DNA of 64,000 nt, from the sequence record OV032902.1. One strand, written 5' to 3'. The notes beneath the pieces were generated by a model that worked only from the letters and a program-made list of their open reading frames with translations, made no database searches and had not been told where the DNA came from. Made by a program: the position numbers and the translations under genes. Each line of letters begins with the position of its first letter. Position 1 is the stretch's first letter. Shown piece by piece: positions 7,599 to 48,966 of this stretch.

Positions 7599-7613
7599 TA
7601 TGACCTCAAGGTC
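7599..7613 (+). promoter_or_regulatory. Putative late promoter (phiKZ-type TATG) with +1 hairpin
   Basis: AT-rich ...AATCT-TATG, then GACC-TCAA-GGTC; lies between the terminator and the 7646 start. Confidence 0.55.
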
Positions 7614-7645
7614 AAGTTTAATGCATTAACTTTATAGGCCACAAA

Positions 7646-9253
7646 ATGAAAGAAAATTTTGTAATCCACTTGATCAATGCAAGTGATTCGACCCCAACGG
7701 GTTGGGTACTTATTACTAACGAAGAATACTTTAATGGAGAGGAGTTGCAACCGTTCTCTATTATGGCTTCTTACGAGAAGAGTGTTTTAGTAAACTTCGA
7801 AGGTAAGATTTACAAGTCATTGTTTGCTATGGGCCCTGGAGACTTCAATGAGTCGGCATGGGTTCGTGTAGATCGAGCTTATTCAGAAATTCCAAAGGTT
7901 GATTCGACTCTGTCGTATCCTGAAGACGCTTTGGTATTAGATATTCTAGGGAATCTTAAGTACAGTATTTTCGCGGTAGCTCCGGGTGATACTTCTACTT
8001 GGGAAGACCCAACTACTGGTCTCGAAGTTGCTTCGGCATTTGCCTACTTCGAAGACGAACTAGAAACTAAGTCTCGCTTAGTATCTGGTAAAATGGTTAA
8101 GCTAGCTTCAGCTGATGATACAGCATTGCCTGATTTCGTTGGCGAGTTAGAAGACCCAGAAGAAGCTTATAAGGGCGACCTTACTGAAAAGGTTGTTGCT
8201 TATTATGATGCAAGTCAAATCGCTACGCTGAGCACTACGCTTGCTCCTGGTAATGTTCCAGCAGAAGATGAGCGAGTAGCTTTTGTTCGTGATATCTCAG
8301 GTAATGGTAACCACGCTATTCAGATGGATGTACGTAAGCGTCCAGTTCTTAAGCGTGATGCCAATGGTCGTTTCTTCCTGCGATTCAATCCAGGTAACTA
8401 CATGGAAACCAAGTTCCCGCATACTGGCGAAGTAAGTCAGTTTGTAAACTTTGCGGCAGCTGGTGTTCCTCGTTTCGTTGATACTTACGACGGCAAGATT
8501 CGTCTAGGTATGAAGTCAGAAGCAGATGAGCGTTACTGGGCATGGGGCGGTGAAGCTATTGTTGAAGCAGAACAAGACATTCTTATTCGTGATGAGATTC
8601 GTGCTAAGGTTGTCACGGACAAAGATTCGTATGCTCCTCGTACGCAGTTCTCTGGCTTTAACTTGTTCCGTGATGAAACCACTCTAGTTGACCACATGTC
8701 AGACTTCGACACTACTGGCATGAAAGCATTACCTGGCTTCCTAGAAGGCTGTCTAAACTTCAACGATGATATCTCAGGTTGGGATGTTACAGAGAGTACA
8801 GACTTCCGACGCTTCTTTAAGAACTGTCCATTGTTTGACGGTGAAATCTCTAACTGGGATACTACCAAGGCTACTCGTATGGATGAGATGTTCCAGGGTG
8901 CTACGGCATTCAACTCTGACATCTCTAGCTGGACAGTCGACAACGTAACCAGCTTCTACTGTATGTTCCGTTTTGCTGAGTCTTTTGATCAGCCGCTTAA
9001 TACATGGAATACAGGACTTGCTGAAAGTATGTCATTTATGTTTGAAGGCGCATTAGCTTTCAATCAACCCCTTTCTAACTGGGACCTTTCTTCTTGTCAG
9101 TTCTTGATGGCATTCCTTCGTGGAGCAACATCATTCGAACAAGATCTAAGTACCTGGTGTGTTTCTCATATTGCTATTCGTCCTACTGACTTTATGGACG
9201 AAGACGAAGTCAACGGCGACGCATTCGAACCTCGCTGGGGCGAAGCTTGTTAA
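7646..9253 (+). CDS. DUF285-repeat protein, 535 aa: N-terminal anchor module + fibre-like domain + repeats + Cys cap
   Basis: Repeats in the C-terminal third, DISGNGNH domain, ends WCVSHI..PTDF..EPRWGEAC; N-terminus resembles the ~200-aa cassette adaptors. Confidence 0.8.
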   Translation: MKENFVIHLINASDSTPTGWVLITNEEYFNGEELQPFSIMASYEKSVLVNFEGKIYKSLFAMGPGDFNESAWVRVDRAYSEIPKVDSTLSYPEDALVLDILGNLKYSIFAVAPGDTSTWEDPTTGLEVASAFAYFEDELETKSRLVSGKMVKLASADDTALPDFVGELEDPEEAYKGDLTEKVVAYYDASQIATLSTTLAPGNVPAEDERVAFVRDISGNGNHAIQMDVRKRPVLKRDANGRFFLRFNPGNYMETKFPHTGEVSQFVNFAAAGVPRFVDTYDGKIRLGMKSEADERYWAWGGEAIVEAEQDILIRDEIRAKVVTDKDSYAPRTQFSGFNLFRDETTLVDHMSDFDTTGMKALPGFLEGCLNFNDDISGWDVTESTDFRRFFKNCPLFDGEISNWDTTKATRMDEMFQGATAFNSDISSWTVDNVTSFYCMFRFAESFDQPLNTWNTGLAESMSFMFEGALAFNQPLSNWDLSSCQFLMAFLRGATSFEQDLSTWCVSHIAIRPTDFMDEDEVNGDAFEPRWGEAC

Positions 9254-9264
9254 CGGAGTATACA

Positions 9265-32143: not shown

Positions 32144-32760
32144 TCTATTTTACCTTCTAGCTCTACGCTGTAACAATACATGAAGCGACGCGAGGTACGC
32201 TTCGGACGGATAACAGACACTGCGGACTGTCTGTATAGCTTACTGTATGGAAGTTCTTTAACAACCGTAACAGCAGCTTGACGATATAGGCTCGCACTAT
32301 CTTTGATGCGGATTACAGAAGTTGCAGTCACGCGATACATGTGAGATGGGTCACGTTGTCGCACAACAGTTACAGCGGCTTGTCTGTATAACTTAGCAGC
32401 TCCCTTAATCTTAATTACCGACACTGCGGACTGTCGATATAGATTAGCGGGTTCTGGCATCTTCATAATGTAATCAACAGACATCGAAGTAAGGTTCGGG
32501 CCTGGATTCGGTTTCAGGATATAATCAATAGAAGCACCCGTCACATTAGGTCCCGGATTAGGAGCCATGATGTAATCAATAGATGCACCATATGTTTGCA
32601 CAGACTGTTGATCTGTATAAACTACTGATATTTCCTGTGCCTTGATATTAGGACCAGTGGCAGGCCCAAGAACTAACGAGAGCTCCTGAGCCTTAATGTT
32701 CGGACCATCTGAAGGACCTAAGACCAAAGACATCTCATGTGCATTGATCTTAGTACTCAT
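32140..32760 (-). CDS. Cassette A gene 5: 11-repeat beta-strand 'scaffold' protein
   Basis: ~17-aa repeats in three classes: 3x (K/N)I(N/K)A(H/Q)E.S.V, 3x (GA/SM)S.DYI, 5x LYRQ.AV.V. Confidence 0.75.
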   Translation of the reverse strand: MSTKINAHEMSLVLGPSDGPNIKAQELSLVLGPATGPNIKAQEISVVYTDQQSVQTYGASIDYIMAPNPGPNVTGASIDYILKPNPGPNLTSMSVDYIMKMPEPANLYRQSAVSVIKIKGAAKLYRQAAVTVVRQRDPSHMYRVTATSVIRIKDSASLYRQAAVTVVKELPYSKLYRQSAVSVIRPKRTSRRFMYCYSVELEGKIE

Positions 32761-35347: not shown

Positions 35348-35350
35348 GTC

Positions 35351-36706
35351 TTACTCCTCGAACGTAACAAAGATCGTAGAGTTATCTTTAAACAACTCAT
35401 CTAGTTTTGTACTAGTAACCGCATCGGTTTGATACCAACCACCTACTTGTTCAATGAACGTAACTGTTTCAGTTACACCATCAGCATTACTGAAAGTAGC
35501 ATCTAGGTTCGTCTTACCGCCCCACTGCTTAGTGCCATCGAACTCAAGAGAGATCTTCTTGGTAGAACCATCTCGGAAAAGGGTAAGCATTTCGGTTTGG
35601 TCGTCTGCGGTATGATGCATTGTCTGTGAACCATTGGCTTGGTCCACGCCGTAACGCCCACTAAAGCCTAGCATGGATACTACGTTTACTGTGAAGTTAG
35701 GACCTTTACTGATTTCCACACCTACCTGCATGCTGTTAAGGTCAGCCTTTGTCCAAGGTAAACCTGTGTGAGGGTTAGTCAACAGGATGTCTTGGTGCGT
35801 ACCTAGAGCAGAGTTCTCGTCAAGGTTAGTACCAGCGCCCACAGTATAGTGGTCATTAGAACCAAACATGATTGTATTCTTTAGATGCTTAGCAGCAGCT
35901 GTCGCTTGTGCGTCTGCCACAGAACCAACACCAACAGCAAGGATTTCATACTTGTCCATGTCGACGCCGCCTTTAACGTCACCGACAGCAAAGTTCTGTT
36001 TGCCTGGTCCATAGAACTTGAACGCGTCTTGAGTTAGCTCTTCGCCAAGGTCACTGTATGAACCTTCAGCTTCTTGTTTAACGCCTTCGTTTTCCATGAC
36101 GTGTTCGATAACGCGCATGCCGATAGTTTCTTCGTCTTCAGTCAGAACCATCTGCGTAATAGAGCCGTCACAGATAATACCGTGTGAAAGATTACGCCAG
36201 TCAAGTTGCTGCATCTTAGTTACAGTAGCTTCGCCTTGGAATTGTTCGTCTGCCCAGAATGCTACTTTACCTGTATTGTTATTCATACGAATATCAATAT
36301 TGTAAGCACCACCAGGACGAGTGAATGAAATCTGTGTCTGACCGGCAGAAGAACCATCCGGCATAAACTGAATGACCAGCTTAGTACTTGTTACTGAGAC
36401 CCAGATATTGAATGTACTTAATGCGATGTTTGATTTACCGATACGAATATCAGGATTACCGCCCGCAGAGGTCGCGCAGAAGTGCAGCCAAAGGATACCT
36501 TTCTCCGTGCTGAATTGGCGAAGTGGGAATTTACTGCGTTCGTAGTTGTCAATCAGATGCGACTGACGGTAGTAAGAAAACTTGTTATCGCCTGTGGATG
36601 CATCAAGAATCTTCAGGTTACGAGCACGAAGGTCGTAATCCGAGTTAAACTGGTAGCCGCTTTGTACTTCGTAATTGACGTCGTTTTGAATATATAGAAA
36701 TGACAT
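35351..36706 (-). CDS. Cassette A gene 2: 451-aa putative adhesin paralog
   Basis: MSFLYIQN; ETIGMRV...NPHTGLPW core. Confidence 0.65.
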   Translation of the reverse strand: MSFLYIQNDVNYEVQSGYQFNSDYDLRARNLKILDASTGDNKFSYYRQSHLIDNYERSKFPLRQFSTEKGILWLHFCATSAGGNPDIRIGKSNIALSTFNIWVSVTSTKLVIQFMPDGSSAGQTQISFTRPGGAYNIDIRMNNNTGKVAFWADEQFQGEATVTKMQQLDWRNLSHGIICDGSITQMVLTEDEETIGMRVIEHVMENEGVKQEAEGSYSDLGEELTQDAFKFYGPGKQNFAVGDVKGGVDMDKYEILAVGVGSVADAQATAAAKHLKNTIMFGSNDHYTVGAGTNLDENSALGTHQDILLTNPHTGLPWTKADLNSMQVGVEISKGPNFTVNVVSMLGFSGRYGVDQANGSQTMHHTADDQTEMLTLFRDGSTKKISLEFDGTKQWGGKTNLDATFSNADGVTETVTFIEQVGGWYQTDAVTSTKLDELFKDNSTIFVTFEE

Positions 36707-38208
36707 TATATAACCTTACATTCAAGGGTGAACGCGATGTCTGCTAATGTAGAGTCAGCAGACCCTTTAACTTGTAGTTTGATGAGATCGGTGGTCGAGA
36801 AATTGACCGTGGCAGGTACACTAAACGTGCCTTCTGTTTCGCCTGCATTCCAAGTAACCGTACCAACTTCTGTGTCGTTCTTAAGGATAGAAATAACACA
36901 TGTTCCTGTAGCAGCTGTTTGAGCAACAGCAGAAGATGCTAATGGAATCGTAGCAAGTTGGAACTTACGTACTGGATTGTCTACACATAAAAGCTCGTCA
37001 TCACGTAGTGTTTCAGACAAGAAAGCTTTTGTATAGTGTAACTCAGGTTTAGTGAAGGATAGTTTTTGTGTCCAATCATTCGCATCAAAGGCTTTTGGTA
37101 GAATCGTAGCTTTGGCTGTATAAACATACAGATTGATTCCGTCGGCTACAAGAACACTATCGTCTGCAACATAGGTGTTAGCAGCTGAAAAGTATCCCTT
37201 GAATTCTCCACCTTTGTGGATGGTCTCATGGTTGTCCCACTGAATGGGATCAAAAGGACCGGCAGCAATATTTAATTTTGCAGAGAGAACATCAATCTCA
37301 CCGTCATCATTAATGCGTGTTATCACGTCGTATTTGTTATATGATGCGGTAGCGTCAAATCGATTTCTGTATCGACCGCCAATGAGAAATGTTTCTTGCA
37401 AATTCCAGAGCGAAAGATTAAAAGCAGAAGAGTTGTCGATGTTAGTGCGAGCAACGTATAACTTGATGTTACCGTCAGCTTCTTCTTTGATTACGGTGTC
37501 ACCAGTAATGTAGTTAACACCTGCACCATATCGACCTTTGTAGGAAGGTAGTTGTACGTCTAGTCGTAAAGTCCACTCATTGACATCGAATGCTTTCGGC
37601 TCTATGTCCAATTTACATTCGTATACTTTCGTACCCAGTACCACAAGGTCATGCTCTTCGTAAGAAAGAGCTACGTTGTGATTACCGCGCCAATGCGAGT
37701 GTACGTCATTTACGGTAGCGTTGAGTTCTGTTAGAACTTCAAAGTTATTAGCGTCATACGGAACTGGGTCCGAGAACACTTTTGATTTAATTATCTTTAT
37801 GGTTTCCGACTCAACCTTAAGAAAGACTAAGTCAATGAACAAAGGTTTGCTTGCGTCATACATACCACCCCAGATTTCCCCCGAAATATCCGGAACATAA
37901 AACAAGTCCCAGTAATTACTGTCGGTGATAGGTATGTTGTTTCCCGCAGGCATTTCCTTTACACACTTAAAGAAACCGAACTTCAATCTCATCTCTGTAC
38001 CCAGAGGATACGCAAGATTAGGATTGTAGACAGTTTCTACTTGGACGCCAACTCCAGGAGCTGGTTCCGTCACATGGTCTTCTAAGATACCCGTGATATC
38101 AATCAACCCGTTGACAGTTTCGGCAAGATCTTTACCGTTACTGTTTTCTGGATGATCTTTCTCCGGGTGAGACACTAGCTTTTTAACGTTGTGTGATGTA
38201 GTTCTCAT
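36706..38208 (-). CDS. Cassette A gene 1: 500-aa fibre-like protein with Trp-capped ~55-aa repeats
   Basis: Start MRTTSH at 38208; repeated G.(F/Y)...Y...D.V....Y.A....F....W units; C-terminal beta domain ending ADSTLADIAFTL. Confidence 0.7.
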   Translation of the reverse strand: MRTTSHNVKKLVSHPEKDHPENSNGKDLAETVNGLIDITGILEDHVTEPAPGVGVQVETVYNPNLAYPLGTEMRLKFGFFKCVKEMPAGNNIPITDSNYWDLFYVPDISGEIWGGMYDASKPLFIDLVFLKVESETIKIIKSKVFSDPVPYDANNFEVLTELNATVNDVHSHWRGNHNVALSYEEHDLVVLGTKVYECKLDIEPKAFDVNEWTLRLDVQLPSYKGRYGAGVNYITGDTVIKEEADGNIKLYVARTNIDNSSAFNLSLWNLQETFLIGGRYRNRFDATASYNKYDVITRINDDGEIDVLSAKLNIAAGPFDPIQWDNHETIHKGGEFKGYFSAANTYVADDSVLVADGINLYVYTAKATILPKAFDANDWTQKLSFTKPELHYTKAFLSETLRDDELLCVDNPVRKFQLATIPLASSAVAQTAATGTCVISILKNDTEVGTVTWNAGETEGTFSVPATVNFSTTDLIKLQVKGSADSTLADIAFTLECKVI

Positions 38209-38239
38209 GGATAAAATTTCCATTCTAATTAAAAGAAAC

Positions 38240-38257
38240 GGTCTTCGGGTGACCATA
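38240..38257 (-). promoter_or_regulatory. Putative late promoter (TATG) with +1 hairpin, cassette A
   Basis: Minus strand TTAATTA-TATG, then G(+1)GTC-ACCCGAA-GACC. Confidence 0.55.
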
Positions 38258-38258
38258 T

Positions 38259-38301
38259 AATTAAACCGAAAAAATAAACCTCCTGACCCGAAGGCCAGGA
38301 G
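38259..38301 (-). terminator. Intrinsic terminator ending cassette B
   Basis: Minus strand CTCCTGGCC-TTCG-GGTCAGGAG followed by GTTTATTTTTT. Confidence 0.85.
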
Positions 38302-38308
38302 AATTTAG

Positions 38309-38953
38309 TTAGTCTTCATCAGGACTTGTACTACCATCATCTCGGAAAAGACGCAAGTTATCATGGAGTATCATCTCATCCCAAAAGGATGTGGTATCCG
38401 TGATAATCTCAGGCTTCTCTTCTTCGACGGTATCTGGATCGAACGGTTCTTCTGCGTACTCCAATCGGTCGCCGTAAAAGAACACGCCGTATTTCATTTC
38501 GAAAGGTTCTGTTTCAAAGTCAATAGAATCGTAAACAGTCAATGCTGGTATCTGGTGGCCAGACTCTACTTCTACCCATTCTTCAGGACGCCAAATTCCT
38601 TTACCTGCATCTAAGCGAGAAAAGATTTTGCCGCCATAAGAGATAACGTCAAACTTGTCGTAATGCTCTTCTGGATTAAAGTAAGAGATGAAACCTTGGT
38701 GTACTGTGATAGGAAGAAGCTTACGGTTATTCTTACCGGTGTAAAAAGCCTTGTCTTCTTCCAACAGGATAACGCCCGTATCCTTTTCGTCAATAACACT
38801 ATCGACAAGATACTGGACGTCACCATTGATTTCATATACTGCATCCTTTACAAAGCGTTCGTAAAACGTACGACTTGTAAGGTAAACGTTCAGTGGAACT
38901 TCTAGACTTTGGTCAATCGTGAATAGTCGAACGATAAAACTTCTGTCTAGCAT
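38309..38953 (-). CDS. Cassette B gene 7: adaptor/anchor protein, 214 aa
   Basis: Paralog of 31091..31657 (F.V.L..., GF(I)..F.P...Y...D.I.Y.G...W). Confidence 0.75.
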   Translation of the reverse strand: MLDRSFIVRLFTIDQSLEVPLNVYLTSRTFYERFVKDAVYEINGDVQYLVDSVIDEKDTGVILLEEDKAFYTGKNNRKLLPITVHQGFISYFNPEEHYDKFDVISYGGKIFSRLDAGKGIWRPEEWVEVESGHQIPALTVYDSIDFETEPFEMKYGVFFYGDRLEYAEEPFDPDTVEEEKPEIITDTTSFWDEMILHDNLRLFRDDGSTSPDED

Positions 38954-38955
38954 AA

Positions 38956-39450
38956 TTACACCTTAGGAATACGTTGTGTGATTTTGAATTTCGAAATATC
39001 GAAAGCGGTATTAGCAGGGATGAGAACTTGTGATACAAGCACTAGAATCTCAGAGCCCTGTTCGTACAGCACAGTAACACCAGCAGGATACTCTAGTGTG
39101 TTGGTGTACATACCGCCGAATGCCGTAAGATCTTGGGCTGGCATCCAGAATAGCTTCCAATAGTTTCGATCTGTAATATCTACAGTCTGACTTGCAGAGA
39201 TGTCCTGAACACAACGAAAGTAGCCTTGTGCGCTGCGTAGTTCATCGCCTACTGCATAAGCCTTAGACTGATCGTAATAATCGTAAGTGTTCACGTTAGG
39301 ATTTACCTCTGGTTCAGCATTGATAGATTCAGCGCCTGTACGCTCTACAAGGAAGTTAGCCGTGTTAATGATAGTTTGGTACAGATCATTAGCAGGGTCT
39401 TCCTTAGTAGACATAGAGACGATTTTACGTAAGGGACGTTCAGTGTTCAT
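38956..39450 (-). CDS. Cassette B gene 6: short paralog of the N-terminus of the 499-aa protein
   Basis: VNPNVNTY...GDELRSAQGYFRCVQDI...NYWKLFW. Confidence 0.75.
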   Translation of the reverse strand: MNTERPLRKIVSMSTKEDPANDLYQTIINTANFLVERTGAESINAEPEVNPNVNTYDYYDQSKAYAVGDELRSAQGYFRCVQDISASQTVDITDRNYWKLFWMPAQDLTAFGGMYTNTLEYPAGVTVLYEQGSEILVLVSQVLIPANTAFDISKFKITQRIPKV

Positions 39451-39459
39451 ACATTCTCC

Positions 39460-40083
39460 TTACTTCAAATCTACAACGTATGAGTTTACGAAACGGCGTC
39501 GCTTAGGTCCCGCAGGAACAACGACAACCGATACTGTTTGCTTGTGTACTTTACCGTACCAGTAAATAGGTGCGACAACAGTAGAAGCTGTTTGCTTATG
39601 TAGACGTGCCTCCGGTGGTGGAGGAGCAATAACAATCGAAATCGTTTGTTTGTGTAGCTTCGCCTTCAAGTTACTTGGAGCAACAACTACCGATACAGTT
39701 TGTTTATGTACGTCTGCCAATGGAGCAGGGAACATAACTACATCAATATAAGCTGACTTAACATTAGGTCCTGGCTGTGGAGCTAGAACAACATCCTGAT
39801 AAGCTGACTTGACAAAAGGACCTAGTTCGGGCTGAAGGACTACGTCTTGATAAGCTGACTTTATATTTGGGCCTGAAATGGGAGCGAAGACAACGTCTTT
39901 ATACAAGCTCTTCGTCGTAACCAGATTTTGTGTGCGCATTACAACAGAAATCTGCTGGTGAGAGACACGAGGACCTGGGTCCGGTTTCATAACAACAGAA
40001 ATCTGCTGATGTGCTACCTTTGGACCCGGTTCTGGTTTTAATACAAGAGAGACCTGTTGATGGCGTACATCAGTTGTACTCAT
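39460..40083 (-). CDS. Cassette B gene 5: 11-repeat beta-strand 'scaffold' protein
   Basis: 3x HQQ(V/I)S.V, 4x KS(A/L)Y.DVV, 4x HKQT.S.V; C-terminal RRF..Y.V.L as in cassette A. Confidence 0.75.
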   Translation of the reverse strand: MSTTDVRHQQVSLVLKPEPGPKVAHQQISVVMKPDPGPRVSHQQISVVMRTQNLVTTKSLYKDVVFAPISGPNIKSAYQDVVLQPELGPFVKSAYQDVVLAPQPGPNVKSAYIDVVMFPAPLADVHKQTVSVVVAPSNLKAKLHKQTISIVIAPPPPEARLHKQTASTVVAPIYWYGKVHKQTVSVVVVPAGPKRRRFVNSYVVDLK

Positions 40084-40093
40084 GGTCTACTCC

Positions 40094-41416
40094 TTATGAG
40101 ATTGGACGGATAATCGCCTTAACGGTTGTATTCTCGGCAGCCACAAAATCATCACGGCAGCCGTCAGGGACTACGCCTTCGTATCTGGTAGAGCCATCAT
40201 ACTCTAGAGTAAATTCATACCCTTTTCCGTTAACAAGTACCGACACTAAAATCTTAGACTCGCCAGTGCTGATGAGTCCATTGCTACCGCCAGTGAACGA
40301 AATATTGAATTCGGAAGGACTTCCTGACTTAGAAAAGAAACGATTAATAGTTTCTCCTGTCATTGCCTTGGTTGTAGAACCAAAGATGACCGTAGTGGCC
40401 ATTCCGTATTCGTTGGATGCTGACTTACCGACTGTGATTTCAAAATCCGACTCTAATGCCTGAACACCGAATTGCATGTTATCGAAATCGGTGTTTGTCC
40501 ATACTTGTCCCGTAAGCGGATTAGTATGCATGATAGTTGTCAAAGAACCAGCGTGACTGTCCGGCCCCTGTCCGATAGGAGTTGCGCACTCTTTAGGCGA
40601 GCCGCTGTCATTAACTATATTAGCCAAGAACGGAGCTGTAGACGATGACGTCGCAGACGCTACCGTGCCAATGATAACAGCCTCTGGAACAAGACCTGCG
40701 GCCTTAGCAGAAGTAGGAATATTCTCATAGTCATACGTTTGTGAGCTGGCACCAGTTGCAGATGCGAATGTAATCGGGTCTAGCTGATCGCCAGAAATAT
40801 CCGCATAGCTGCCACTAAAGCCAGTCAGTGCACCATCACTTTCTGCGTCTACTGTTAGCAGGCGCATTCCTCGTGTATCCGAATCAGAAACAATAATCTC
40901 TGTCATTCGATTACCATTTAATGCACGAGCAGCAAAACCATGTAAGGTATTTACAGGATGCGATGTACCCATCCAACCGGCAGTGTCTTCTCCATCGATT
41001 ACACCGTCACGGTAAATTCTAACGGTATTGCCGGTAATCTGAATGTCCCAGTCATGCGGGTCATTTGAACCAACGGCACCCGCTGTAGGAGTAATCGTGG
41101 AAACCAGTGACGCTCCCTGATAAACCTTGAATAGTCCATCAGAGCCATCAATCAAAACGGCAGCAATGTCTGCATTATTGGTACTCTTGAAACGGGCAGC
41201 TACATCTCGACTGCCTGCTCGAAAGTGAATCCAGATAGAACCCGTAGTGGTTTCCTCAAATGGTGCGAAATCAGCAAAGTTGTTATCAATCGACCAAGAT
41301 TGAAAATCGCCGGAGTTAGATGTCGCCGAGGTACTCGTACGTTGGTTACCAGCCTGCAAAGAGTTAGCTAGAGGAACATGCATCGTTGCGATGTTTATTA
41401 CGTGTAAAATAGCCAT
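40094..41416 (-). CDS. Cassette B gene 4: 440-aa putative adhesin paralog
   Basis: TEIIVSDSDTRGMRL...NPLTGQVW core. Confidence 0.65.
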   Translation of the reverse strand: MAILHVINIATMHVPLANSLQAGNQRTSTSATSNSGDFQSWSIDNNFADFAPFEETTTGSIWIHFRAGSRDVAARFKSTNNADIAAVLIDGSDGLFKVYQGASLVSTITPTAGAVGSNDPHDWDIQITGNTVRIYRDGVIDGEDTAGWMGTSHPVNTLHGFAARALNGNRMTEIIVSDSDTRGMRLLTVDAESDGALTGFSGSYADISGDQLDPITFASATGASSQTYDYENIPTSAKAAGLVPEAVIIGTVASATSSSTAPFLANIVNDSGSPKECATPIGQGPDSHAGSLTTIMHTNPLTGQVWTNTDFDNMQFGVQALESDFEITVGKSASNEYGMATTVIFGSTTKAMTGETINRFFSKSGSPSEFNISFTGGSNGLISTGESKILVSVLVNGKGYEFTLEYDGSTRYEGVVPDGCRDDFVAAENTTVKAIIRPIS

Positions 41417-41427
41417 GGTCTAACTCC

Positions 41428-42759
41428 TTATGCATTACCGATGATCGTGAAGTATAACTTCTTACCTACGTCTTTCTCAATAGATTCAGAAATACGAAGC
41501 GCGAGGTCACTGCCGAAAAGTCGGAAGTAGTTACCAGTTTCATGAGGAATCTCTAAAATTCCACCTGGTCCGTCTTCTACCGCAATTTTAAGCGTCACCG
41601 AACTAAAGCCGTTGTCGCCACCACCGTCAAACTCTAGGAACATGTCGCCATTCTGTTTAAATGCTAACGCATAGAGCGCAGCATGAGCGCCACCATGTGT
41701 CATGTCACCAGAAATAATAGTAGAGTTAAGTTTACCGTAGCCGAATTGAACTGGGCTACCGCCAAGGTTATCGGTGTCCGTTACAACAGTCATTGCAACA
41801 TTGCGAATACGCAGACTAGATGTATCGATCAGAGCAGATGACCATTGACCACCAGTAAGAGGAGCCACAGCATCAATGTTCTGGTTTAGGTTTGCATCCG
41901 TTTCTGTCGACAGTACACGGTAACCGATAAGATGCTCATCTGTACCGTCAAACAGAGAGTACTCCAAGACAGGAGAGTCAGGTGTACCTACGATGTCTGC
42001 AACAGAACCCACGTTAACTCCAACAACCTTCATGCCAGAAAGCTGAACGTTAGAGAAGTTAAGGTCAAGTACTGAGCCAGCAGCAGGAGATGACATAGCA
42101 GCTTCAGTAAGCGATGTAGTTTGAATATCAGAAAGAGAACCACTGAAATCATTCTGTGCGCCGATAGAAGCGGGCTTGGTGGATTGAACGCGCCAGCCGC
42201 GAGTATCTGTATCCGAGAAACAGATTTCAGACAAATAGGCACTGGAACTTGCCAGATTAAACGTCATGTATGATAACTGACGAGATCCCATATAGCCGTT
42301 CGAACCACCAAAGGCACGTGCGCCGTTTATATAAACGTCAAACTTGTTTTCCGCTCCATTCCAATGAATATCGACGTCATTGAAATCGTTCTGACTCATA
42401 CTAGGACTCAGACCACCGGTTGAAGGAGTAGACGATGAATTGTTTGCACCAAAAGCATTAGCAGACAGTTTAAAGTTAGTGTAACCAGCATCAGAGCCGC
42501 CTGCCTCATAATGGACCTTCATGGTAAGGTTACCAGAACTAGGTCTTAGACGGAAATGCATCCAAAGATTTTCAGTGGACAATGTAACCGGTAGACGGAA
42601 GAAGGTATCCGAATCTGTCCATTGGCTAAATGCCCAGTCAGTAACAGTATCCAGGGCAGTAGCGTCAACAACGCCAGCGGTACGCTCATCTTCTGACGTG
42701 TATTCTTTACCTGACTGAACAGAAGCGTTGCCTGGGTTGAGAGTATGAATAATAGTCAT
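41428..42759 (-). CDS. Cassette B gene 3: 443-aa putative adhesin paralog
   Basis: SEICFSDTDTRGWRV...APLTGGQW core. Confidence 0.65.
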   Translation of the reverse strand: MTIIHTLNPGNASVQSGKEYTSEDERTAGVVDATALDTVTDWAFSQWTDSDTFFRLPVTLSTENLWMHFRLRPSSGNLTMKVHYEAGGSDAGYTNFKLSANAFGANNSSSTPSTGGLSPSMSQNDFNDVDIHWNGAENKFDVYINGARAFGGSNGYMGSRQLSYMTFNLASSSAYLSEICFSDTDTRGWRVQSTKPASIGAQNDFSGSLSDIQTTSLTEAAMSSPAAGSVLDLNFSNVQLSGMKVVGVNVGSVADIVGTPDSPVLEYSLFDGTDEHLIGYRVLSTETDANLNQNIDAVAPLTGGQWSSALIDTSSLRIRNVAMTVVTDTDNLGGSPVQFGYGKLNSTIISGDMTHGGAHAALYALAFKQNGDMFLEFDGGGDNGFSSVTLKIAVEDGPGGILEIPHETGNYFRLFGSDLALRISESIEKDVGKKLYFTIIGNA

Positions 42760-42769
42760 TTTCTTATCC

Positions 42770-44125
42770 TTATACTGTTACGTAAATCTTAACTAGTTTA
42801 CCTAGCTGGCCTTGCAGCCAAGTAGTAATCGCAGGGTCTGTTACACTGTAATCGATTGTAGCGAACGTCACGGTAGCCGATGCTTCCGTACCGTCTTCAC
42901 TCACAAGACGAACAGTAACAGTATTGGCATTATCGAACTTAGTATCGGTATCGAAGCGAATAGTGAAAACGTTACTTGCAGTAATGGCATTACAGCGAAT
43001 CAAAGCATTACCCGCAGTCTTGTCGGTTGAGATAGAAGTAAACTCACCAGCAAAGCCATCAGCATAGCCAAAGTAAGTTCCGCTATCTGCAACAATCATT
43101 CGACCAACCGGCGGAGCACTGTAAGAGAAACCAGCTTCTAGAGCATTGATTTCAGCAATTGTCCATGCTGCACCAGTAGCAGGGTTTATTTCCATGATGT
43201 CTTTCTGATGCAAAGCATCTGAAGCCGTATCAATGATTGAACCTTTGCCTTTGTATTCAGTACCACCTATCTTGATAACGTTCTCACCGAAGTTATCTTC
43301 AAATAGTTCATCTGCCGAGGCAATAGTGTTGATAGACACGGCACGTACTTCCATGTCAGTCAGGTCTACACCTGCTTTAATGTCTTCGTACGTAAATGTT
43401 TGACTACCAGCGGCGTCAGTAGACATACCTGCCTCAGTTAGCGTGATTGATTGAACATCACTTAGGTTGCCTGTAAGGTCAGTACTTGTACCTAGTGCTT
43501 CTGGTGGAAGTTCGATGAGACGCATACCTAGAGTAGGGATACCCTGTGTAATGATTACTTCGGCAGCACCTGAGCTTACATTAGACGAGTCATTATACCA
43601 CCATTTAAAATCGGAAGCATCCAGAGTCGCTATGCTAGAGTTAGTGCCTTCGCCTACTTTATTTTCGTTAACAAAAGCAGCCCATGCACCAGAAGTAATA
43701 TTGATCTTCACGTCTATGGAACAACGCTGGTTAGTAGGGATAACCGTTTCGCCATAGATTTCAACCGAAGAACCTTTTTCGACATAGATGCCTAGGTTAC
43801 TGGAAGAAGTACCAAAGATCATAAAGTGCGCGCGATTAGAACCTTTTCTTTCGCCTTCAGGGAAGAAGTCGATTTGACAAGCACTAAAGCCTTCGTTCAT
43901 ACGGAAATGAAACCACAGATCATCTGTTTCGTTTTCGAAATCTTCCAGAACACGATAGTTGTAATGCATGTTGTGATCTATGCCGCGCTGATAGTCTGGG
44001 TGACGGTGGCCGTTAGACGTAGACGTCGTTGTACGTTTATCTGTGTTAGTAAAAACGTCATTAGGACCTAAGTCTTTACGGAAGTTAGAGTCACACTCGT
44101 TTTGGATGTATAGGAATTTTGCCAT
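42770..44125 (-). CDS. Cassette B gene 2: 451-aa putative adhesin paralog
   Basis: MAKFLYIQN; PTLGMRL...NPATGAAW core. Confidence 0.65.
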   Translation of the reverse strand: MAKFLYIQNECDSNFRKDLGPNDVFTNTDKRTTTSTSNGHRHPDYQRGIDHNMHYNYRVLEDFENETDDLWFHFRMNEGFSACQIDFFPEGERKGSNRAHFMIFGTSSSNLGIYVEKGSSVEIYGETVIPTNQRCSIDVKINITSGAWAAFVNENKVGEGTNSSIATLDASDFKWWYNDSSNVSSGAAEVIITQGIPTLGMRLIELPPEALGTSTDLTGNLSDVQSITLTEAGMSTDAAGSQTFTYEDIKAGVDLTDMEVRAVSINTIASADELFEDNFGENVIKIGGTEYKGKGSIIDTASDALHQKDIMEINPATGAAWTIAEINALEAGFSYSAPPVGRMIVADSGTYFGYADGFAGEFTSISTDKTAGNALIRCNAITASNVFTIRFDTDTKFDNANTVTVRLVSEDGTEASATVTFATIDYSVTDPAITTWLQGQLGKLVKIYVTV

Positions 44126-44135
44126 GATAAAAACC

Positions 44136-45635
44136 TTATATTACCTGACCTTCGATGGTTACAGAAATGTTAGCAAGAGTAGTATCAGCTGTACCATCTT
44201 GAGTTAACACTAAAGTATCACCGGTAGTGAATGTAGAGTCCGCAGCGAATACAACTGTAGCTGTTGTTGCTCCGGCAGCAAAGTTCAAACGTCCTACCGC
44301 AGTAGAACCATTAGAGATGATTAAAGATGTAGCATTCGTAGAGGCTACTTGAGCTACTGCACTAATACCTGCGCCACCAGCAGCAATTGTAAAGTCACGA
44401 ACAGGAACCTCAATAAAGAGTACCTCGTCGTCTGCGATGGTGTCCATGATAACGGCTTTGGTTACATGAAGAGCAGGCTTAACAAACGTTTGATTAGAAT
44501 CCCACTTGCTTAGATCAATAGGTCCAGCAGGGATTGTTTCTTTAGCGGTCAGTACTTGTAGGTTACCTGAGCCGTCATCATAGAGGACAACGTCACCTTC
44601 GCCATAAGTATTAGCGGCACTAAAGTCACCTCGGAATTCACCACCTTTAAGGATGGTAGTTTTAACCGTCCACTCACCAGCTTGGAATGGACCAGCAGTA
44701 ATTAAAGCATTCGCTTCCAGGATGTCGATTTCACCGTCAGCGTTTTCATTGGTAACGATATCAAACGGGTCATAGTTAGTCACCGTTGAGAAGGCACCTT
44801 TAAACTTACCGCCTACTTTGAAGATAGCCTTTAGCGACCACTGAGCTGAATTGAAAGCACCAGTAGGAACATCTGCGTCTGCTTCATATAGGTTATGATA
44901 ACCCACCAAGTCAACGTAAATGACCAAGTCACCTTTCTTATATGCAACGGCCGTATCGAACGTACCTTTATAAGTAGGCTGGTAGACAGTAGTAAGGATT
45001 GTCCATGCCGCTGGATTGAATGTACCCGCTAACTGACTTGTGTTAGCTTGATAAACGATGTTCTCAATGTAAACGATATCTTCTTCATCATAATCAGAAG
45101 TTTCGCTGAACATACCTTTCCATGCAGCTGAACCACCTGTCGACATAACTTCATGCAAAACAGTAAAGTTGTTTTCGTCGTAAGGTGTATCTGCGTCGAT
45201 TGGACCAATAGCCTTAATAATAAGAATACGGTCTGGCTCAACTTTGTATAGTACCTCACCTTGAACAATGGCTTGAGTCTCGTCAAACTCTCCGCCGAAT
45301 ACATCACCTACTGACGAAGGTAGGTAAAATAAGTCCCAGTGATTTTTATCAGTCAAAGGGATATTGTTGTTGGCTGGCATATCTTCCGTACAGCGAAAGA
45401 AACCAAAAGGAGTTCTGATTTCTGAACCTACTAAATACGGGAAGTTCGGATTGTAGACTGTGTCGACTACGACAGCAGGGGGTGCATCAGGAACCAGACT
45501 TGGGTCTAGTTCGGCACCAGTAATATCAATCAGCCCGTTAAGTACCTCAGCCAGATCTTTACCGTTCGGGTTACGAGGGTCGTATCTGTCTGGATAAGTA
45601 ATGAGCTTCTTTATCTCATGAGAGGTTGTACGCAT
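44136..45635 (-). CDS. Cassette B gene 1: 499-aa fibre-like protein with Trp-capped repeats
   Basis: GGAG RBS before MRTTSHEIKK at 45635; colinear paralog of 36706..38208. Confidence 0.7.
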   Translation of the reverse strand: MRTTSHEIKKLITYPDRYDPRNPNGKDLAEVLNGLIDITGAELDPSLVPDAPPAVVVDTVYNPNFPYLVGSEIRTPFGFFRCTEDMPANNNIPLTDKNHWDLFYLPSSVGDVFGGEFDETQAIVQGEVLYKVEPDRILIIKAIGPIDADTPYDENNFTVLHEVMSTGGSAAWKGMFSETSDYDEEDIVYIENIVYQANTSQLAGTFNPAAWTILTTVYQPTYKGTFDTAVAYKKGDLVIYVDLVGYHNLYEADADVPTGAFNSAQWSLKAIFKVGGKFKGAFSTVTNYDPFDIVTNENADGEIDILEANALITAGPFQAGEWTVKTTILKGGEFRGDFSAANTYGEGDVVLYDDGSGNLQVLTAKETIPAGPIDLSKWDSNQTFVKPALHVTKAVIMDTIADDEVLFIEVPVRDFTIAAGGAGISAVAQVASTNATSLIISNGSTAVGRLNFAAGATTATVVFAADSTFTTGDTLVLTQDGTADTTLANISVTIEGQVI

Positions 45636-45664
45636 GTTATGAGCTCCGTCGTACATTAATCTTA

Positions 45665-45681
45665 GTGGTCTTTGCCACATA
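45665..45681 (-). promoter_or_regulatory. Putative late promoter (TATG) with +1 hairpin, cassette B
   Basis: Minus strand TTAATTT-TATG, then G(+1)TGG-CAAAGA-CCAC. Confidence 0.55.
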
Positions 45682-45682
45682 A

Positions 45683-45727
45683 AATTAAACCGAAAAATAA
45701 ACTCCCCCTGCCCGAAGGCAGGAGGAG
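45683..45727 (-). terminator. Intrinsic terminator ending the tailspike unit
   Basis: Minus strand CTCCTCCTGCC-TTCG-GGCAGGGGGAG followed by TTTATTTTT. Confidence 0.85.
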
Positions 45728-45733: not shown

Positions 45734-48298
45734 TTAATCTACATAACCAGCGTGCATTGCGAACTTGAACCAGTGACGTGCATTGGTATCAGGGTCGAAT
45801 ACAATATCTGTACCAGTGTTGTTAATGATCTGGAATTCAGCACGGATGTACGGAACGCCAGAAGCATTTTCGATAACACGGTAACGAGGGTTAGTAACAT
45901 GTACTAGTTGATCTAACGGTGGTTGATCGTCCCAACTTTCACCCGGGTCAGTCTTCAGAGATTCGTGGTAAACATAGTTCATTGTGATAGAAACATTTTC
46001 CCAATCGAAATCCTCAGCAGAAATACCGCGAGGGAAGTTAGTCAGAGAGATAAACGCTTCGTAAGGTTCATCAGCCTTAAGAGTCTTACCCTTCAGGTTG
46101 ATTGCCTTGCTTTCGTAGCTAAGTACGTTCATGATGAACTGATCAGTAATACCGATGCCATCTGCTACCGCTGCTACGCTCTTACCAGCGCCAGGGGCAT
46201 TTGCATTCTTAGCCGAGAAACGCATCTTCCAGTCAAACTCTAACTGGCCATCCCAAGGAGTCTTATCGTAGACCCATGGACGGAATACGTATTCACGTTG
46301 ACCACAGAACAAACCTTGGAATTCACCGATGTTCGAACCAGCAGGAGACTGTACGTCACCACCTAGTCGTTCGTGCTCTTGGTAAGCGGTCAAGTGCAAC
46401 AGGTGAATAGATTTGCTTCGTGTCTCTACTAGGGAACCAAACACGTCACTACGAGGGTGAGTGATATGGTTCTTAGACATAGCAGAGTAAACGTTAGAAT
46501 CCGCGTTAGTGTCCGCAGCTGTTTCTTCTAGGTAGCGCATCTTACACATTGTGTTACGACGAATATCCGTAGATGTTGTCGTAAAGTTAATGTCGTTAGA
46601 GAACGCACGAGGAGTTACAGCTAGACATGCAGACCAACGACATGGGTTCCAGTCAGCTTTGTCTTTAATAGCAGACGTACCGAATGGGTCGATGTTGTGC
46701 GCATCAAAGTGTTTCTCTGCCGATACACCATTACCAGTAGTACCACGAGTACCAAAGTAGAAAGCACCACCACGGTTACCGAACGTATCGAAGTTACCGA
46801 TGTCGTTAACTGAAGCAATGTATGTGTATTTAGCGTGAGTAACAAGACGACCATCTGGAGTAGGCCATTGACCTTTATCACGGGTGTTCATAGACGTTTG
46901 GTAAGCATCACGTAGATACATGCCCCAACCGCCGTTGTTAACCGCACCACAAGAAGTCCAAGTGTTGTGCATCAAGTCTTCGTAACCAGCAGGGTTGTAC
47001 CAGCCATCAAGGCCATTGTTACGACCTAGACATAAATGGAACGTATTGTACGCACCATCGATAAGCAACCAACCATTCCAAGGCATGTAGTCACAAAGAA
47101 TGTTAGTGAACTTGTTGTAAGATGAACGTGCTTGTGAGTAGAACTTACCTTCCAAGAACGGAGTCATCTGTGAAGCAGCAGAAGGGTACGACTGTAGGTT
47201 GTACAGAGAAACTTCAACAGTTTCAGTGCCAGCAGGTAGACCGCCAGGTACAACAACAGTAGTAGTCGTATCGCCTTCAGCAATAGGCTTATGATAAGCA
47301 CGCTCTTCACCAGCATTCGGCATGTAGTCAGCATCCACATCAGGACGAGAAGTACATTGACGGTTCTTAGCGAAGATACCTACAACACCGCCGCCTAGTT
47401 TAGCACCAACGTTAGCCATACGAAGAATTTCTACACCCGATGCATCAAAAGCACGTACCCAGCGAACTAGCGGGATGTCAATTGTGTTATCTGGGATAAC
47501 TTCTTCTGGCGTGCTGAAACCACCAACTTCAGGAACGATGATTTCTGCATGGCCACCAGCAGTAGTAGAGAAAGACGTTAGTCCTTCCCAAACGTTTGGC
47601 TTAGCAAAACGCTTCTGTGGGAAAGTGTTGTTTTGAGCCGCCCAGTATTGCTGCGTTGAAGGAGCAGTAGTTGGACCAGCAATTGCAGGAAGAGGAGGAG
47701 TATGACCTGTAACGATGCCGTTACCGCCGTCGCCTTCTTGCTTAAGTGTACCGATAACAGCAAAGTCACCGATGTCAGCAGAACCACATTGGGTACGGAT
47801 ACCATCGTTGTCATTGCCGCCAATAGGCATGAATGCCGTAGCGTATTCGATAAGGCCTTGTAGAGCATCGCTCGACGCACCAGCAATCTGCTTACGACGA
47901 ATGAATGAACCTTGACCTTTAAACTTACCCGAGCCTACAGGGATAAGTAGGTTACCGACGATCGGGAAATAACCACGACCAACGACAACATTGAATTTAG
48001 CGTTGATACTAGTAAGATCAACATCTAAGCCGTTTTCATCTTTAGTACCTAGGGCTTGTTCTAGCTTGAGCTGGTTACGTTCTGCCATCGCAGTACCTGC
48101 AATAGGGTCGATAGCAAAATTGATTTCAGCTTCTTCTTTAGTTTCGCCTAGGCTTTCAAGAAACACTGTAACATCACCCTCTTCAGCCGAAGCCTGGATG
48201 ATGTCAATCATCGCGTTGATAACATTCGCCAGGTCTTCACCTGTTGAGTTACCAGTGTCACCCAGAATGCCAGCTGTAATTTTATTGAGTTGTGTCAT
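45734..48298 (-). CDS. Putative tailspike/depolymerase-like virion protein, 854 aa
   Basis: N-terminal STGEDLANVINAMIDI anchor helix, then AMAERNQLKLEQAL...VVVGRGYFPIVGNLLIP...FKGQG, typical of the entry to a right-handed beta-helix; Gly/Asn/Trp-rich body. Confidence 0.55.
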   Translation of the reverse strand: MTQLNKITAGILGDTGNSTGEDLANVINAMIDIIQASAEEGDVTVFLESLGETKEEAEINFAIDPIAGTAMAERNQLKLEQALGTKDENGLDVDLTSINAKFNVVVGRGYFPIVGNLLIPVGSGKFKGQGSFIRRKQIAGASSDALQGLIEYATAFMPIGGNDNDGIRTQCGSADIGDFAVIGTLKQEGDGGNGIVTGHTPPLPAIAGPTTAPSTQQYWAAQNNTFPQKRFAKPNVWEGLTSFSTTAGGHAEIIVPEVGGFSTPEEVIPDNTIDIPLVRWVRAFDASGVEILRMANVGAKLGGGVVGIFAKNRQCTSRPDVDADYMPNAGEERAYHKPIAEGDTTTTVVVPGGLPAGTETVEVSLYNLQSYPSAASQMTPFLEGKFYSQARSSYNKFTNILCDYMPWNGWLLIDGAYNTFHLCLGRNNGLDGWYNPAGYEDLMHNTWTSCGAVNNGGWGMYLRDAYQTSMNTRDKGQWPTPDGRLVTHAKYTYIASVNDIGNFDTFGNRGGAFYFGTRGTTGNGVSAEKHFDAHNIDPFGTSAIKDKADWNPCRWSACLAVTPRAFSNDINFTTTSTDIRRNTMCKMRYLEETAADTNADSNVYSAMSKNHITHPRSDVFGSLVETRSKSIHLLHLTAYQEHERLGGDVQSPAGSNIGEFQGLFCGQREYVFRPWVYDKTPWDGQLEFDWKMRFSAKNANAPGAGKSVAAVADGIGITDQFIMNVLSYESKAINLKGKTLKADEPYEAFISLTNFPRGISAEDFDWENVSITMNYVYHESLKTDPGESWDDQPPLDQLVHVTNPRYRVIENASGVPYIRAEFQIINNTGTDIVFDPDTNARHWFKFAMHAGYVD

Positions 48299-48915
48299 TT
48301 GTGAATCTCCAACTGATTGTGAATTTCAAGATCACGATGTAGCTCGCCCAATGTAGAGCCAGCTTGGTAAAGTGATTCGATATTTGGGTCTGTGTCCTTA
48401 GGACGTCTCATTCGATTCTTGGTCCTTGTAGGACGACCCAACTCGATGATCATAGAATCACCAAGTACAGTAGATTCTGCACCACCTGTATCAGAGTAGT
48501 ACGTAACATCGGTAAGGGTATATTCAGGACGCACAAGAACCCACTCTTTGCGCTTGAACGGACCTTTACCAGGAGCACGACGAATGTAGACATTACCACC
48601 AACAATGGCTAAGTCTTCATCTGCGTAGTACTTTTCAGGGTCGAAGGGAGCTACATAAGCCGTACCTGATTCTAAAGGTAGTAGAGTACCCTCAGTAACA
48701 GCACGATAAAACTTTCCTTCTTTACTTAGCAATGAACCCAGAAAACGACGAACGTAAGTTTCGCTTTCTGTAATCGCTACTTGGGTTTCAACATTAGTGC
48801 TGAAGTCCGCAACCAAGCGACCATGAAGATCTTTACTAACGATATAGTAATTGGTATTCTCGATAGTTCCATCTGTCTTGAATAACGCCAACCTTAAAAT
48901 AAGTTCATTTTTCAT
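48295..48915 (-). CDS. Adaptor/anchor protein, 206 aa (third paralog)
   Basis: Same AGTAGGTGTC leader as 31657; PFDPEKYY.DED...GG.VY.RR.PG.G.F...EW.LV motif. Confidence 0.75.
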   Translation of the reverse strand: MKNELILRLALFKTDGTIENTNYYIVSKDLHGRLVADFSTNVETQVAITESETYVRRFLGSLLSKEGKFYRAVTEGTLLPLESGTAYVAPFDPEKYYADEDLAIVGGNVYIRRAPGKGPFKRKEWVLVRPEYTLTDVTYYSDTGGAESTVLGDSMIIELGRPTRTKNRMRRPKDTDPNIESLYQAGSTLGELHRDLEIHNQLEIHK

Positions 48916-48947
48916 TACGACACCTACTTCGTTGAAAAAGATTTATA

Positions 48948-48966
48948 GGTCTTTCCTGAGACCATA
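48948..48966 (-). promoter_or_regulatory. Putative late promoter (TATG) with +1 hairpin
   Basis: Minus strand AAATCT-TATG, then G(+1)GTCT-CAGGAA-AGACC. Confidence 0.55.

Follow-up and report, generated by a model that had tools for sequence, protein, structure and literature searches.

Hairpins at the presumed start of predicted phiKZ-type late promoters in the giant Vibrio phage sm033 as candidate 5′-terminal protective stems

What guides a phiKZ-type non-virion RNA polymerase to its promoters, given a consensus of four nucleotides, is still unanswered (PMC4666361, PMC12809450). The late promoters that this enzyme reads in phiKZ carry TATG, whose G is position +1 (PMC4666361). We met the same question in bases 1-64000 (hereafter the window, 64 kb) of Vibrio phage vB_VpaM_sm033 (OV032902.1), a 320-kb chimallivirus, where an earlier note had described four TATG sites that lead directly into hairpins. 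This giant, nucleus-forming phage has a gene for the nuclear shell, and several split β and β′ RNA polymerase genes are annotated in its genome. One gene, at genome positions 247079-248650, encodes a protein whose entire length aligns with phiKZ gp123 (E = 1e-38), the β-like subunit of the non-virion RNA polymerase that contacts TATG (PMC12809450).

The four sites are present as described, with the T of TATG at 7599 (+), 38257 (-), 45681 (-) and 48966 (-). Each 4-5 bp stem opens at the G of TATG, and pairing is kept while stem sequences differ (GACC/GGTC, GGTC/GACC, GTGG/CCAC and GGTCT/AGACC, with loops of 4, 7, 6 and 6 nt). At site 1, an intrinsic terminator with a 9-bp GC-rich stem, a UUCG loop and a T run (7554-7585, +; terminator scan and sequence) ends the giant DUF285 gene upstream. 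It is followed by the motif TAAAT-CT-TATG (7592-7602, +; predicted +1 at G 7602), which matches the logo of phiKZ late starts, by the hairpin GACC-UCAA-GGUC (7602-7613, +; -5.0 kcal/mol) and, after a 44-nt leader, by a gene for a DUF285/BspA-like repeat protein (7646-9253, +; Pfam PF03382, E 8e-64, and annotation). Site 2 likewise has an intrinsic terminator on its 5′ side (38279-38302, -; terminator scan), then TTAAT-TA-TATG (38254-38264, -; predicted +1 at G 38254) and the hairpin GGUC-ACCCGAA-GACC (38240-38254, -; -5.1 kcal/mol), which a simple scan also calls weakly terminator-like on account of its U-rich tail. The gene behind it (36706-38208, -; 46-nt leader) is the first of appendage cassette copy 1 and encodes 500 aa with a tail-fibre-like C-terminus (PHROG tail-fibre matches; annotation).

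Site 3 repeats this arrangement, with a terminator at 45702-45727 (-; terminator scan), the motif TTAAT-TT-TATG (45678-45688, -; predicted +1 at G 45678) and the hairpin GUGG-CAAAGA-CCAC (45665-45678, -; -4.5 kcal/mol, z -3.7). After a 43-nt leader comes the first gene of appendage cassette copy 2 (44136-45635, -), a paralog of 36706-38208. Sites 2 and 3 thus head two paralogous gene cassettes and are not independent of each other. At both, the ATG within TATG shares the reading frame of the gene, and we considered whether TATG might simply be a start codon. The two N-terminal extensions this would imply have no similarity to each other, and both paralogs begin MRTTSH at their annotated starts, so we rejected this reading. 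Site 4 carries a variant motif, CAAAT-CT-TATG (48963-48973, -; predicted +1 at G 48963), and the hairpin GGUCU-CAGGAA-AGACC (48948-48963, -; -6.0 kcal/mol), with a 48-nt leader before a 206-aa gene of no known family (48295-48915, -) and then an 854-aa gene (45734-48298). The intergenic region that holds it is divergent, with an early-type TATATTAC promoter facing away from it on the + strand.

All four hairpins are the RNAfold minimum-energy folds of positions +1 to +24 (-4.5 to -6.0 kcal/mol). Taken singly, each is weak (z from -1.4 to -3.7), with 1 to 22 of 200 shuffles folding equally well. The stems of sites 1 and 2 can be extended into TATG by one or two pairs. A search of the 64-kb window against the curated Rfam models gave no match at the gathering score.

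TATG is part of a longer motif at these sites, T(T/A)AAT-N2-TAT(G/A); the earlier note had reasoned from a 4-nt consensus and missed this 11-nt upstream motif. The four sites are the only non-coding copies of the late-type motif in the window, and a fifth gene-oriented intergenic TATG, at 49023 (-), has neither motif nor hairpin. The core, AAT-N2-TATG, matches the consensus of experimentally mapped phiKZ late promoters, in which the last base is +1. Using phiKZ starts from the supplement of bioRxiv 10.1101/2023.10.13.562163 (precision plus or minus 2 nt), snapped to TATG within 3 nt (49 of 66 kept), we found this core enriched, at 12 of the 49 mapped late starts against just 21 copies in the whole phiKZ genome. 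The logo of these 49 starts shows A at -8 in 25, A at -7 in 36 and T at -6 in 30, and AAT occupies -8 to -6 in each of the 17 sm033 motif copies.

The phiKZ late promoters (Yakunina 2015, PMC4666361; PMC12809450) thus share with the sm033 sites TAT(G/A) at the start point (mapped in phiKZ, predicted in sm033), the A(-8) A(-7) T(-6) preference, a position upstream of virion and appendage genes and a genome that encodes gp123 or its homolog. This resemblance supports the proposal that the sites are phiKZ-type late promoters for a non-virion RNA polymerase. In sm033, by contrast, the conserved upstream part extends further and varies less (T-W-A-A-T), half of the sites have a +1 hairpin, and the starts are predicted. 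Transcription from the TATA variants of phiKZ begins at the last A. In sm033, transcription would start at the last base of TATR; this +1 is assigned by homology with phiKZ, and the offset-0 position of the stems depends on it.

Plain TATG proved unsuitable as the unit of analysis, with a hairpin at 15 of 251 non-coding copies in the sm033 genome (6%) versus 2.75% of coding copies. Many intergenic TATG in this genome belong to early promoters of the type TCTATATTACC-N2-TATGG. A hairpin-first, motif-blind test of 4-mers was also set aside: TATG and TATA do not stand out in it, because non-promoter copies dilute their signal.

Anchored on the extended motif, the association exceeds chance. A Watson-Crick hairpin begins at the predicted +1 at 8 of the 17 non-coding motif copies in the sm033 genome, versus 0.64 expected from shuffles (P = 1.5e-8). 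Among the copies left after removing those from which the idea arose, 5 of 14 have one (P = 5e-5). Hairpin starts peak at offset 0 from the predicted +1, and ten sites have a stem there. This supports the claim that pairing, rather than a particular stem sequence, recurs at the predicted +1. We found several stem sequences, including GUGG, AGGG, GGUUG, AGUG and GCUGC, and twelve different loops that share no conserved sequence. GGUC/GACC recurs in 4 of the 10 stems, each time with a different loop, which may point to shared ancestry or to a reader that recognises this sequence. The stem at genome position 251864 is closed by a G·U pair, and that at 303745 is not the minimum-energy fold.

These numbers bear on the reading that the hairpins have no function and are chance inverted repeats or leftovers of duplicated terminator-promoter cassettes. 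The weakness of each stem on its own, the paralogy of sites 2 and 3 and the identical stems at 289007 and 297056 are what it would predict. However, chance fits poorly with the probabilities above, and duplication fits poorly with the details: sites 2 and 3 have their upstream 30 nt in common and keep pairing despite unrelated stems, and the identical stems enclose different loops. Orthologous hairpins are also kept in phage vB_pir03 and in C-ZP2022, with yet other stems, and one C-to-T change there yields a G·U pair. We consider absence of function very improbable. IMG/VR queries with nrdB, a cassette protein and the major head protein gave unrelated nrdB matches or nothing, and the covariation is therefore read from vB_pir03 and C-ZP2022. 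Across copies, paralogs and orthologs, structure is kept while stem and loop sequences vary freely, with two G·U pairs, which favours a structure in RNA rather than in DNA.

The earlier note had suggested that the hairpin might be a structure-encoded downstream promoter element that explains specificity. In that role, close to the promoter, it would help the non-virion RNA polymerase to initiate or to escape, through its structure as DNA or nascent RNA, and would lend specificity to the short consensus. Its position exactly at the predicted +1 agrees with this, as does the phiKZ promoter P119L, which needs positions +1 to +51 (a swap causes an about 30-fold loss) while phiKZ shows no conserved downstream sequence (PMC4666361). 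Other results point the other way. Nine of the 17 sm033 motif copies lack a Watson-Crick hairpin; such copies precede virion structural genes, among them conserved virion genes at 120703, 231471 and 236099. Copies of AAT-N2-TATR in related Vibrio phages are mostly without one, too (hairpins at 3/32, 2/28, 4/28 and 1/22). Of the 49 mapped phiKZ late TATG starts, 2 (4%) have a hairpin, versus 2.5% of 2601 other TATG; fold energy at mapped starts is no different (P = 0.48), and P119L itself has no hairpin. The enrichment that the note had proposed to test is thus seen after the extended motif in sm033 and not at mapped phiKZ TATG starts.

The G·U pairs speak for RNA, a stem of 4-5 bp is not long enough to be extruded from double-stranded DNA, and the sites have a sequence motif in common upstream. 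We judge a promoter element unlikely. The +1 hairpin is not a general promoter code, since mapped phiKZ late starts are not enriched for it. In the BONAISHI genome, the strict motif is not enriched (7 copies versus 15 in a reversed control). BONAISHI has a different element, long palindromes flanked by TATA.

The analogy with N4 that had been drawn fails. Hairpins read by the N4 virion RNA polymerase are DNA structures upstream of the start site, are needed for recognition and serve a single-subunit enzyme. As in N4, a short hairpin is tied to a phage-polymerase promoter in sm033, but here it lies downstream of the predicted +1, it is optional, being absent at those nine copies, and the polymerase is multisubunit.

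A further reading holds that the sites are not transcript starts at all and that the hairpin marks RNA processing or follows the main terminator as a second, weak terminator or attenuator. The terminator-like call at site 2 would suit it, and so would genome position 75120, where motif and hairpin lie between a stop codon and a terminator. Yet a U-rich tail that passes the scan is found at one of the four window sites (site 2); sites 1, 3 and 4 fail, and the set of four does not qualify as intrinsic terminators or attenuators, taken as a GC-rich stem of at least 5 bp with a U run. The upstream motif, moreover, matches mapped phiKZ late promoters, and its copies occur also in divergent intergenic regions between virion genes. 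We consider this reading very improbable, too.

At 75120, where the terminator lies behind the hairpin, most transcripts would be about 50 nt. Short RNAs that arise from 5′ UTRs by premature termination are known from phiKZ and 201phi2-1 (PMC10914365, PMC11512511). The locus and its orthologs in vB_pir03 and C-ZP2022 have a comparable layout of motif, hairpin, intrinsic terminator and then gene, but in sm033 it is a single case, the other nine sites having no terminator in the leader.

The explanation we favour, and hold as possible though somewhat short of probable, is that the sites form a cassette of terminator, late promoter and 5′-terminal protective stem on accessory fibre and adhesin operons. 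By its sequence, each site would serve the phage-encoded, multisubunit non-virion RNA polymerase as a late promoter with its start at the last base of the motif; usually it follows immediately upon the intrinsic terminator that ends the unit before. In about half of the cases, bases 1 to 12-16 of the transcript would fold into a stem-loop of 4-5 bp that leaves no 5′ base unpaired. The stem-bearing promoters are mainly those with 35-64 nt leaders that drive accessory fibre/adhesin operons; genes behind hairpin sites are tail-fibre-like, DUF285/BspA-like, GH18-like or without an assigned family. Leaders have a median of 46.5 nt with a hairpin versus 25 nt without (P = 0.012; 17 sites).

In E. 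coli, RppH requires unpaired 5′ bases, pairing of the 5′ end slows RNase E cleavage of an RNA more than tenfold, and 5′-terminal stem-loops stabilise mRNAs (review PMC3997798). By analogy, the sm033 stem may act on RNA, not DNA, as a protective structure. With its 5′ end paired, the transcript would be closed to the pyrophosphohydrolase RppH and to the 5′-end sensor of RNase E, and mRNAs with long AU-rich leaders, which would lie open otherwise, would become more stable. Among the options raised by the earlier note, a stem that protects the 5′ end fits best, since it accounts for the long leaders, the G·U pairs, the lack of unpaired bases at the 5′ end and the AU-rich stretch of single strand after the stem. 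The stabiliser function itself is carried over from E. coli and is presumptive in Vibrio and in phage-nucleus infections. Against the model count the short, weak stems (-4.5 to -6 kcal/mol), the recurrence of GGUC/GACC and the terminator behind the hairpin at 75120.

The closest parallels are the 5′-terminal stabilising stem-loops of the enterobacterial ompA and papA mRNAs (Emory, Bouvet and Belasco 1992, as cited in PMC3997798). As there, the sm033 stem-loop would open the RNA without a single unpaired 5′ base, is kept as structure and not sequence, and is followed by a single-stranded AU-rich leader. It differs in being shorter (4-5 bp) and in going with a single class of promoters for a polymerase of the phage, and its function is predicted.

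The restriction of the stem to a subset of late-type promoters, mostly before fibre, adhesin and DUF285 operons, would also suit a tag for a phage or host RNA-binding protein that sets the fate of a late-mRNA subclass (translation timing, export from the phage nucleus or localisation). The recurrence of GGUC/GACC with differing loops would agree with such a reader, whereas the lack of conserved loop sequence and the non-uniform stems argue against it. We think this unlikely, and equally unlikely its most specific form, in which the +1 stem-loop is a deliberate tag on fibre/adhesin late mRNAs, read by a dedicated factor or by the non-virion polymerase, that controls promoter escape, export or translation timing. 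Were it true, a structure-coded layer would sit atop the AAT-N2-TATR promoter.

For the family, one outcome is a clear negative: the +1 hairpin is not the missing specificity determinant in phiKZ. The consensus is really longer, AAT-N2-TATR, and is common to Pseudomonas and Vibrio chimalliviruses, which aids late-promoter annotation in unstudied jumbo phages. The sm033 hairpins themselves add a modest new example, specific to this lineage, to a kind of element already known. The cassette of terminator, promoter and 5′ stabiliser is compact and testable, and could serve expression design in Vibrio or phage engineering. Should a factor prove to read the stems, they would be a first post-transcriptional mark on chimallivirus late mRNAs.

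The window corresponds to bases 1-64000 of OV032902.1, the record of Vibrio phage vB_VpaM_sm033 (sm033, 320,253 bp), and is identical (100%) to the record's first 64 kb. Its annotation lists a nuclear shell protein along with many split genes for RNA polymerase beta and beta', which is why we class sm033 as a phiKZ-like jumbo phage that forms a nucleus. The record carries no annotated genes from 305434 to 319195, and a single open frame of 4936 codons (305445-320252) runs stop-free up to its last bases. The frame probably represents a single giant fibre gene, DUF285/BspA-like, that the arbitrary record start splits; the relative vB_pir03 has a counterpart of 19 kb. The window's first gene (13-7539), which encodes a DUF285-like product of 2508 aa, may continue it, though the two frames join inexactly.

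At four TATG sites, the G opens a hairpin exactly as an earlier note described: GACC/GGTC with a 4-nt loop (site 1, G at 7602, + strand), GGTC/GACC with a 7-nt loop (site 2, 38254, -), GTGG/CCAC with a 6-nt loop (site 3, 45678, -) and GGTCT/AGACC with a 6-nt loop (site 4, 48963, -). Folding bases +1 to +24 of each predicted transcript gives these hairpins as the minimum-energy structures (-4.5 to -6.0 kcal/mol); each is weak on its own (z -1.4 to -3.7), and the stems at sites 1 and 2 can be extended into TATG by one or two pairs. A terminator scan places strong intrinsic terminators 20-25 nt upstream of sites 1-3; site 4 shares a divergent intergenic region with an early-type promoter, the two standing back to back. 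The start codon follows the G by 43-48 nt at all four sites. The first genes behind sites 2 and 3 both open with MRTTSH and head paralogous cassettes, so the four sites amount to three independent cases at most. Across 31091-45727, the window holds two diverged copies of this multi-gene appendage cassette, and a separate terminator, late motif and hairpin stand at the head of each. Rfam gave no matches within the 64-kb window.

Late promoters of phiKZ start at the G of TATG, which is necessary but insufficient; the downstream part of one of them, P119L, has a ~30-fold effect without any conserved sequence, with gp123, a beta-like subunit, binding the non-template strand at TATG (PMC4666361, PMC12809450). 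From 149 phiKZ starts mapped by ONT-cappable-seq (supplement, bioRxiv 10.1101/2023.10.13.562163), we analyzed the 49 of 66 "late" starts lying ≤3 nt from a TATG. Their logo shows A at -8 (25/49), A at -7 (36/49) and T at -6 (30/49). AAT-N2-TATG is found at 12 of the 49, with only 21 copies in the whole phiKZ genome, and several late starts are TATA variants starting at the last A. The window sites share the upstream motif T(T/A)AAT-N2-TAT(G/A), with a CAAAT variant at site 4, which by comparison with this logo and these mapped starts is the phiKZ late consensus in longer and cleaner form. Given this match and a full-length gp123 homolog encoded by sm033 (E = 1e-38), we accept the sites, by homology only, as late-type promoters whose predicted +1 is the final base of TATR (TATG or TATA).

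In sm033, the excess of hairpins over chance attaches to this extended motif. Counting Watson-Crick stems of ≥4 bp that start at the G and enclose a loop of 3-8 nt, we found hairpins at 15 of 251 non-coding TATG (6%) genome-wide versus 2.75% of 2072 coding ones, and rejected plain TATG as a predictor. By contrast, 8 of 17 non-coding strict-motif copies open a Watson-Crick hairpin at the predicted +1, where dinucleotide-preserving shuffles of the 26 nt downstream of each copy predict 0.64 (Poisson-binomial P = 1.5e-8). Leaving out the originally noted sites, 5 of 14 do so versus 0.51 expected (P = 5e-5). Hairpin starts peak at offset 0, with few at neighbouring offsets except nested stems at +1. 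A genome-wide motif search located further non-coding copies with a hairpin from the last base at genome positions 75120, 289007, 297056, 301190 and 303745, and one at 251864 closed by a G·U pair. In TATA variants the final A is paired, so here too the stem starts at the fourth base. Together, the shuffle, held-out and offset statistics indicate that the association is real and reaches beyond the window; chance or passive inheritance is unlikely given these statistics and the changed stems.

Many intergenic TATG in sm033 belong to a separate abundant class, TCTATATTACC-N2-TATGG, with the phiKZ early-promoter core TATATTAC. Members of this class, whose downstream part is conserved (ACCaAcaTGG), occur at window positions 12913, 21639, 49000, 53385 and 58445 and at some 20 further places genome-wide. 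Between small early genes at about 87.2-89.7 kb and 267.7-269.8 kb of the record (L002:37206-39741, L006:17725-19799), another recurring hairpin element, AAACTCGrwGyC...GrCwyC, stands immediately ahead of start codons or TATG.

The earlier note also raised the idea that the hairpin could be a structure-encoded promoter element, and our data speak against it. Nine of the 17 strict-motif copies lack a Watson-Crick hairpin (251864 pairs only through G·U), including those at 120703, 231471 and 236099, ahead of conserved virion genes. At about 120660-120690, where two virion genes diverge, one late-type copy on each strand overlaps the other, a putative compact bidirectional late promoter with a hairpin at neither copy. 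The enrichment sought at mapped phiKZ starts did not appear: hairpins follow 2 of 49 late TATG starts (4%) versus 2.5% of 2601 other TATG, the two sets show no difference in fold energy over +1 to +24 (P = 0.48), and P119L itself lacks a hairpin. A +1 hairpin is not the downstream determinant of phiKZ late promoters. The two phages share a late consensus and differ in the hairpin, present in sm033 and unenriched in phiKZ. Non-coding copies of the core AAT-N2-TATR carry hairpins at 10/37 in sm033, 3/32 in vB_pir03, 2/28 in C-ZP2022, 4/28 in Yong XC31, 1/22 in BONAISHI and 1/27 in phiKZ. Most Yong XC31 copies lie 15-30 nt ahead of a ribosome-binding site, so a stem cannot fit. Although the exact +1 register would suit a hairpin that acts at initiation or promoter escape, the hairpin-less sm033 copies, the phiKZ starts and the mostly hairpin-less relatives make this unlikely.

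In BONAISHI, 49 of 356 non-coding TATA open a hairpin, and dozens of long perfect GC-rich palindromes are flanked by TATA on both sides (L110-L124; e.g. record 4030/4051, 101118/101140, 136344/136365, 178819/178840). These palindromes are unlike the short sm033 stems and probably serve as bidirectional terminators in a house style.

Several features point to structure in RNA. As claimed earlier, pairing is kept while stems differ (GACC, GGUC, GUGG, GGUCU, AGGG, GUGGG, AGGUC, GGUUG, AGUG), and no two loops are alike. Sites 2 and 3 have near-identical terminators and motifs, base for base, followed after the G by unrelated sequence that still folds at both. Two orthologous places in vB_pir03 and C-ZP2022 retain the hairpin with different stems again, AGGCG/CGCCU and GCUGC/GCAGC; one is the junction between nrdB and DUF285, the other heads the appendage cassette. 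One C-to-T difference between these relatives turns a C-G pair into a G·U pair, which is functional only on the sense strand as RNA. Leaders are longer with a hairpin than without (median 46.5 versus 25 nt, P = 0.012), and AU-rich single-stranded sequence comes after the stem.

In the sm033 nrdB/DUF285 gap (record 75110-75183), a late motif and hairpin precede a strong intrinsic terminator ahead of the ribosome-binding site, a layout conserved in vB_pir03 and C-ZP2022 (L013:1328-1407; L100:170-252) that would give rise either to an attenuated leader or to a short RNA, about 50 nt long. This downstream terminator at 75120, and the flagging of site 2 as terminator-like by a simple scan, would suit a processing site or weak attenuator; the other sites do not fit, leaving this reading very doubtful.

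A stem-loop without an unpaired 5' base is a known recipe against 5'-end-dependent mRNA decay: RNase E cleaves RNA with a base-paired 5' end >10-fold more slowly, RppH requires unpaired 5' bases, and E. coli mRNAs are stabilised by 5'-terminal stem-loops (review PMC3997798, with the Belasco papers that it cites). From the predicted +1, the sm033 stems likewise leave no 5' base unpaired, though stabilisation is known for the E. coli mRNAs and inferred for sm033. On this ground we tentatively favor, at somewhat under even odds, a cassette in which a terminator is followed by a late promoter and a 5'-protective stem. The protecting stem envisaged earlier fits the observed features best (varied stems, G·U pairing, no unpaired base at the predicted 5' end, long leaders), and the stabilising role would follow by analogy. 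The genes behind hairpin promoters encode DUF285/BspA-like proteins, tail-fibre-like paralogs and a GH18-like protein. That only such a subclass of operons is concerned, and that four stems repeat GGUC/GACC, would also fit a tag for an RNA-binding factor, which is doubtful as loops are unconserved and no reader is known.

The promoter papers on phiKZ, 201phi2-1 and AR9 that we consulted make no mention of a hairpin at the late start site, and the association seems undescribed; the hairpin itself is a lineage-specific instance, of low folding energy, of a known kind of element. Two by-products are useful in their own right, namely the clean negative result in phiKZ and the extended late consensus AAT-N2-TATR, common to Pseudomonas and Vibrio chimalliviruses. 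In sm033, a 5' stem free of unpaired bases would protect late mRNA from 5'-end-dependent decay, and the cassette would punctuate accessory operons.
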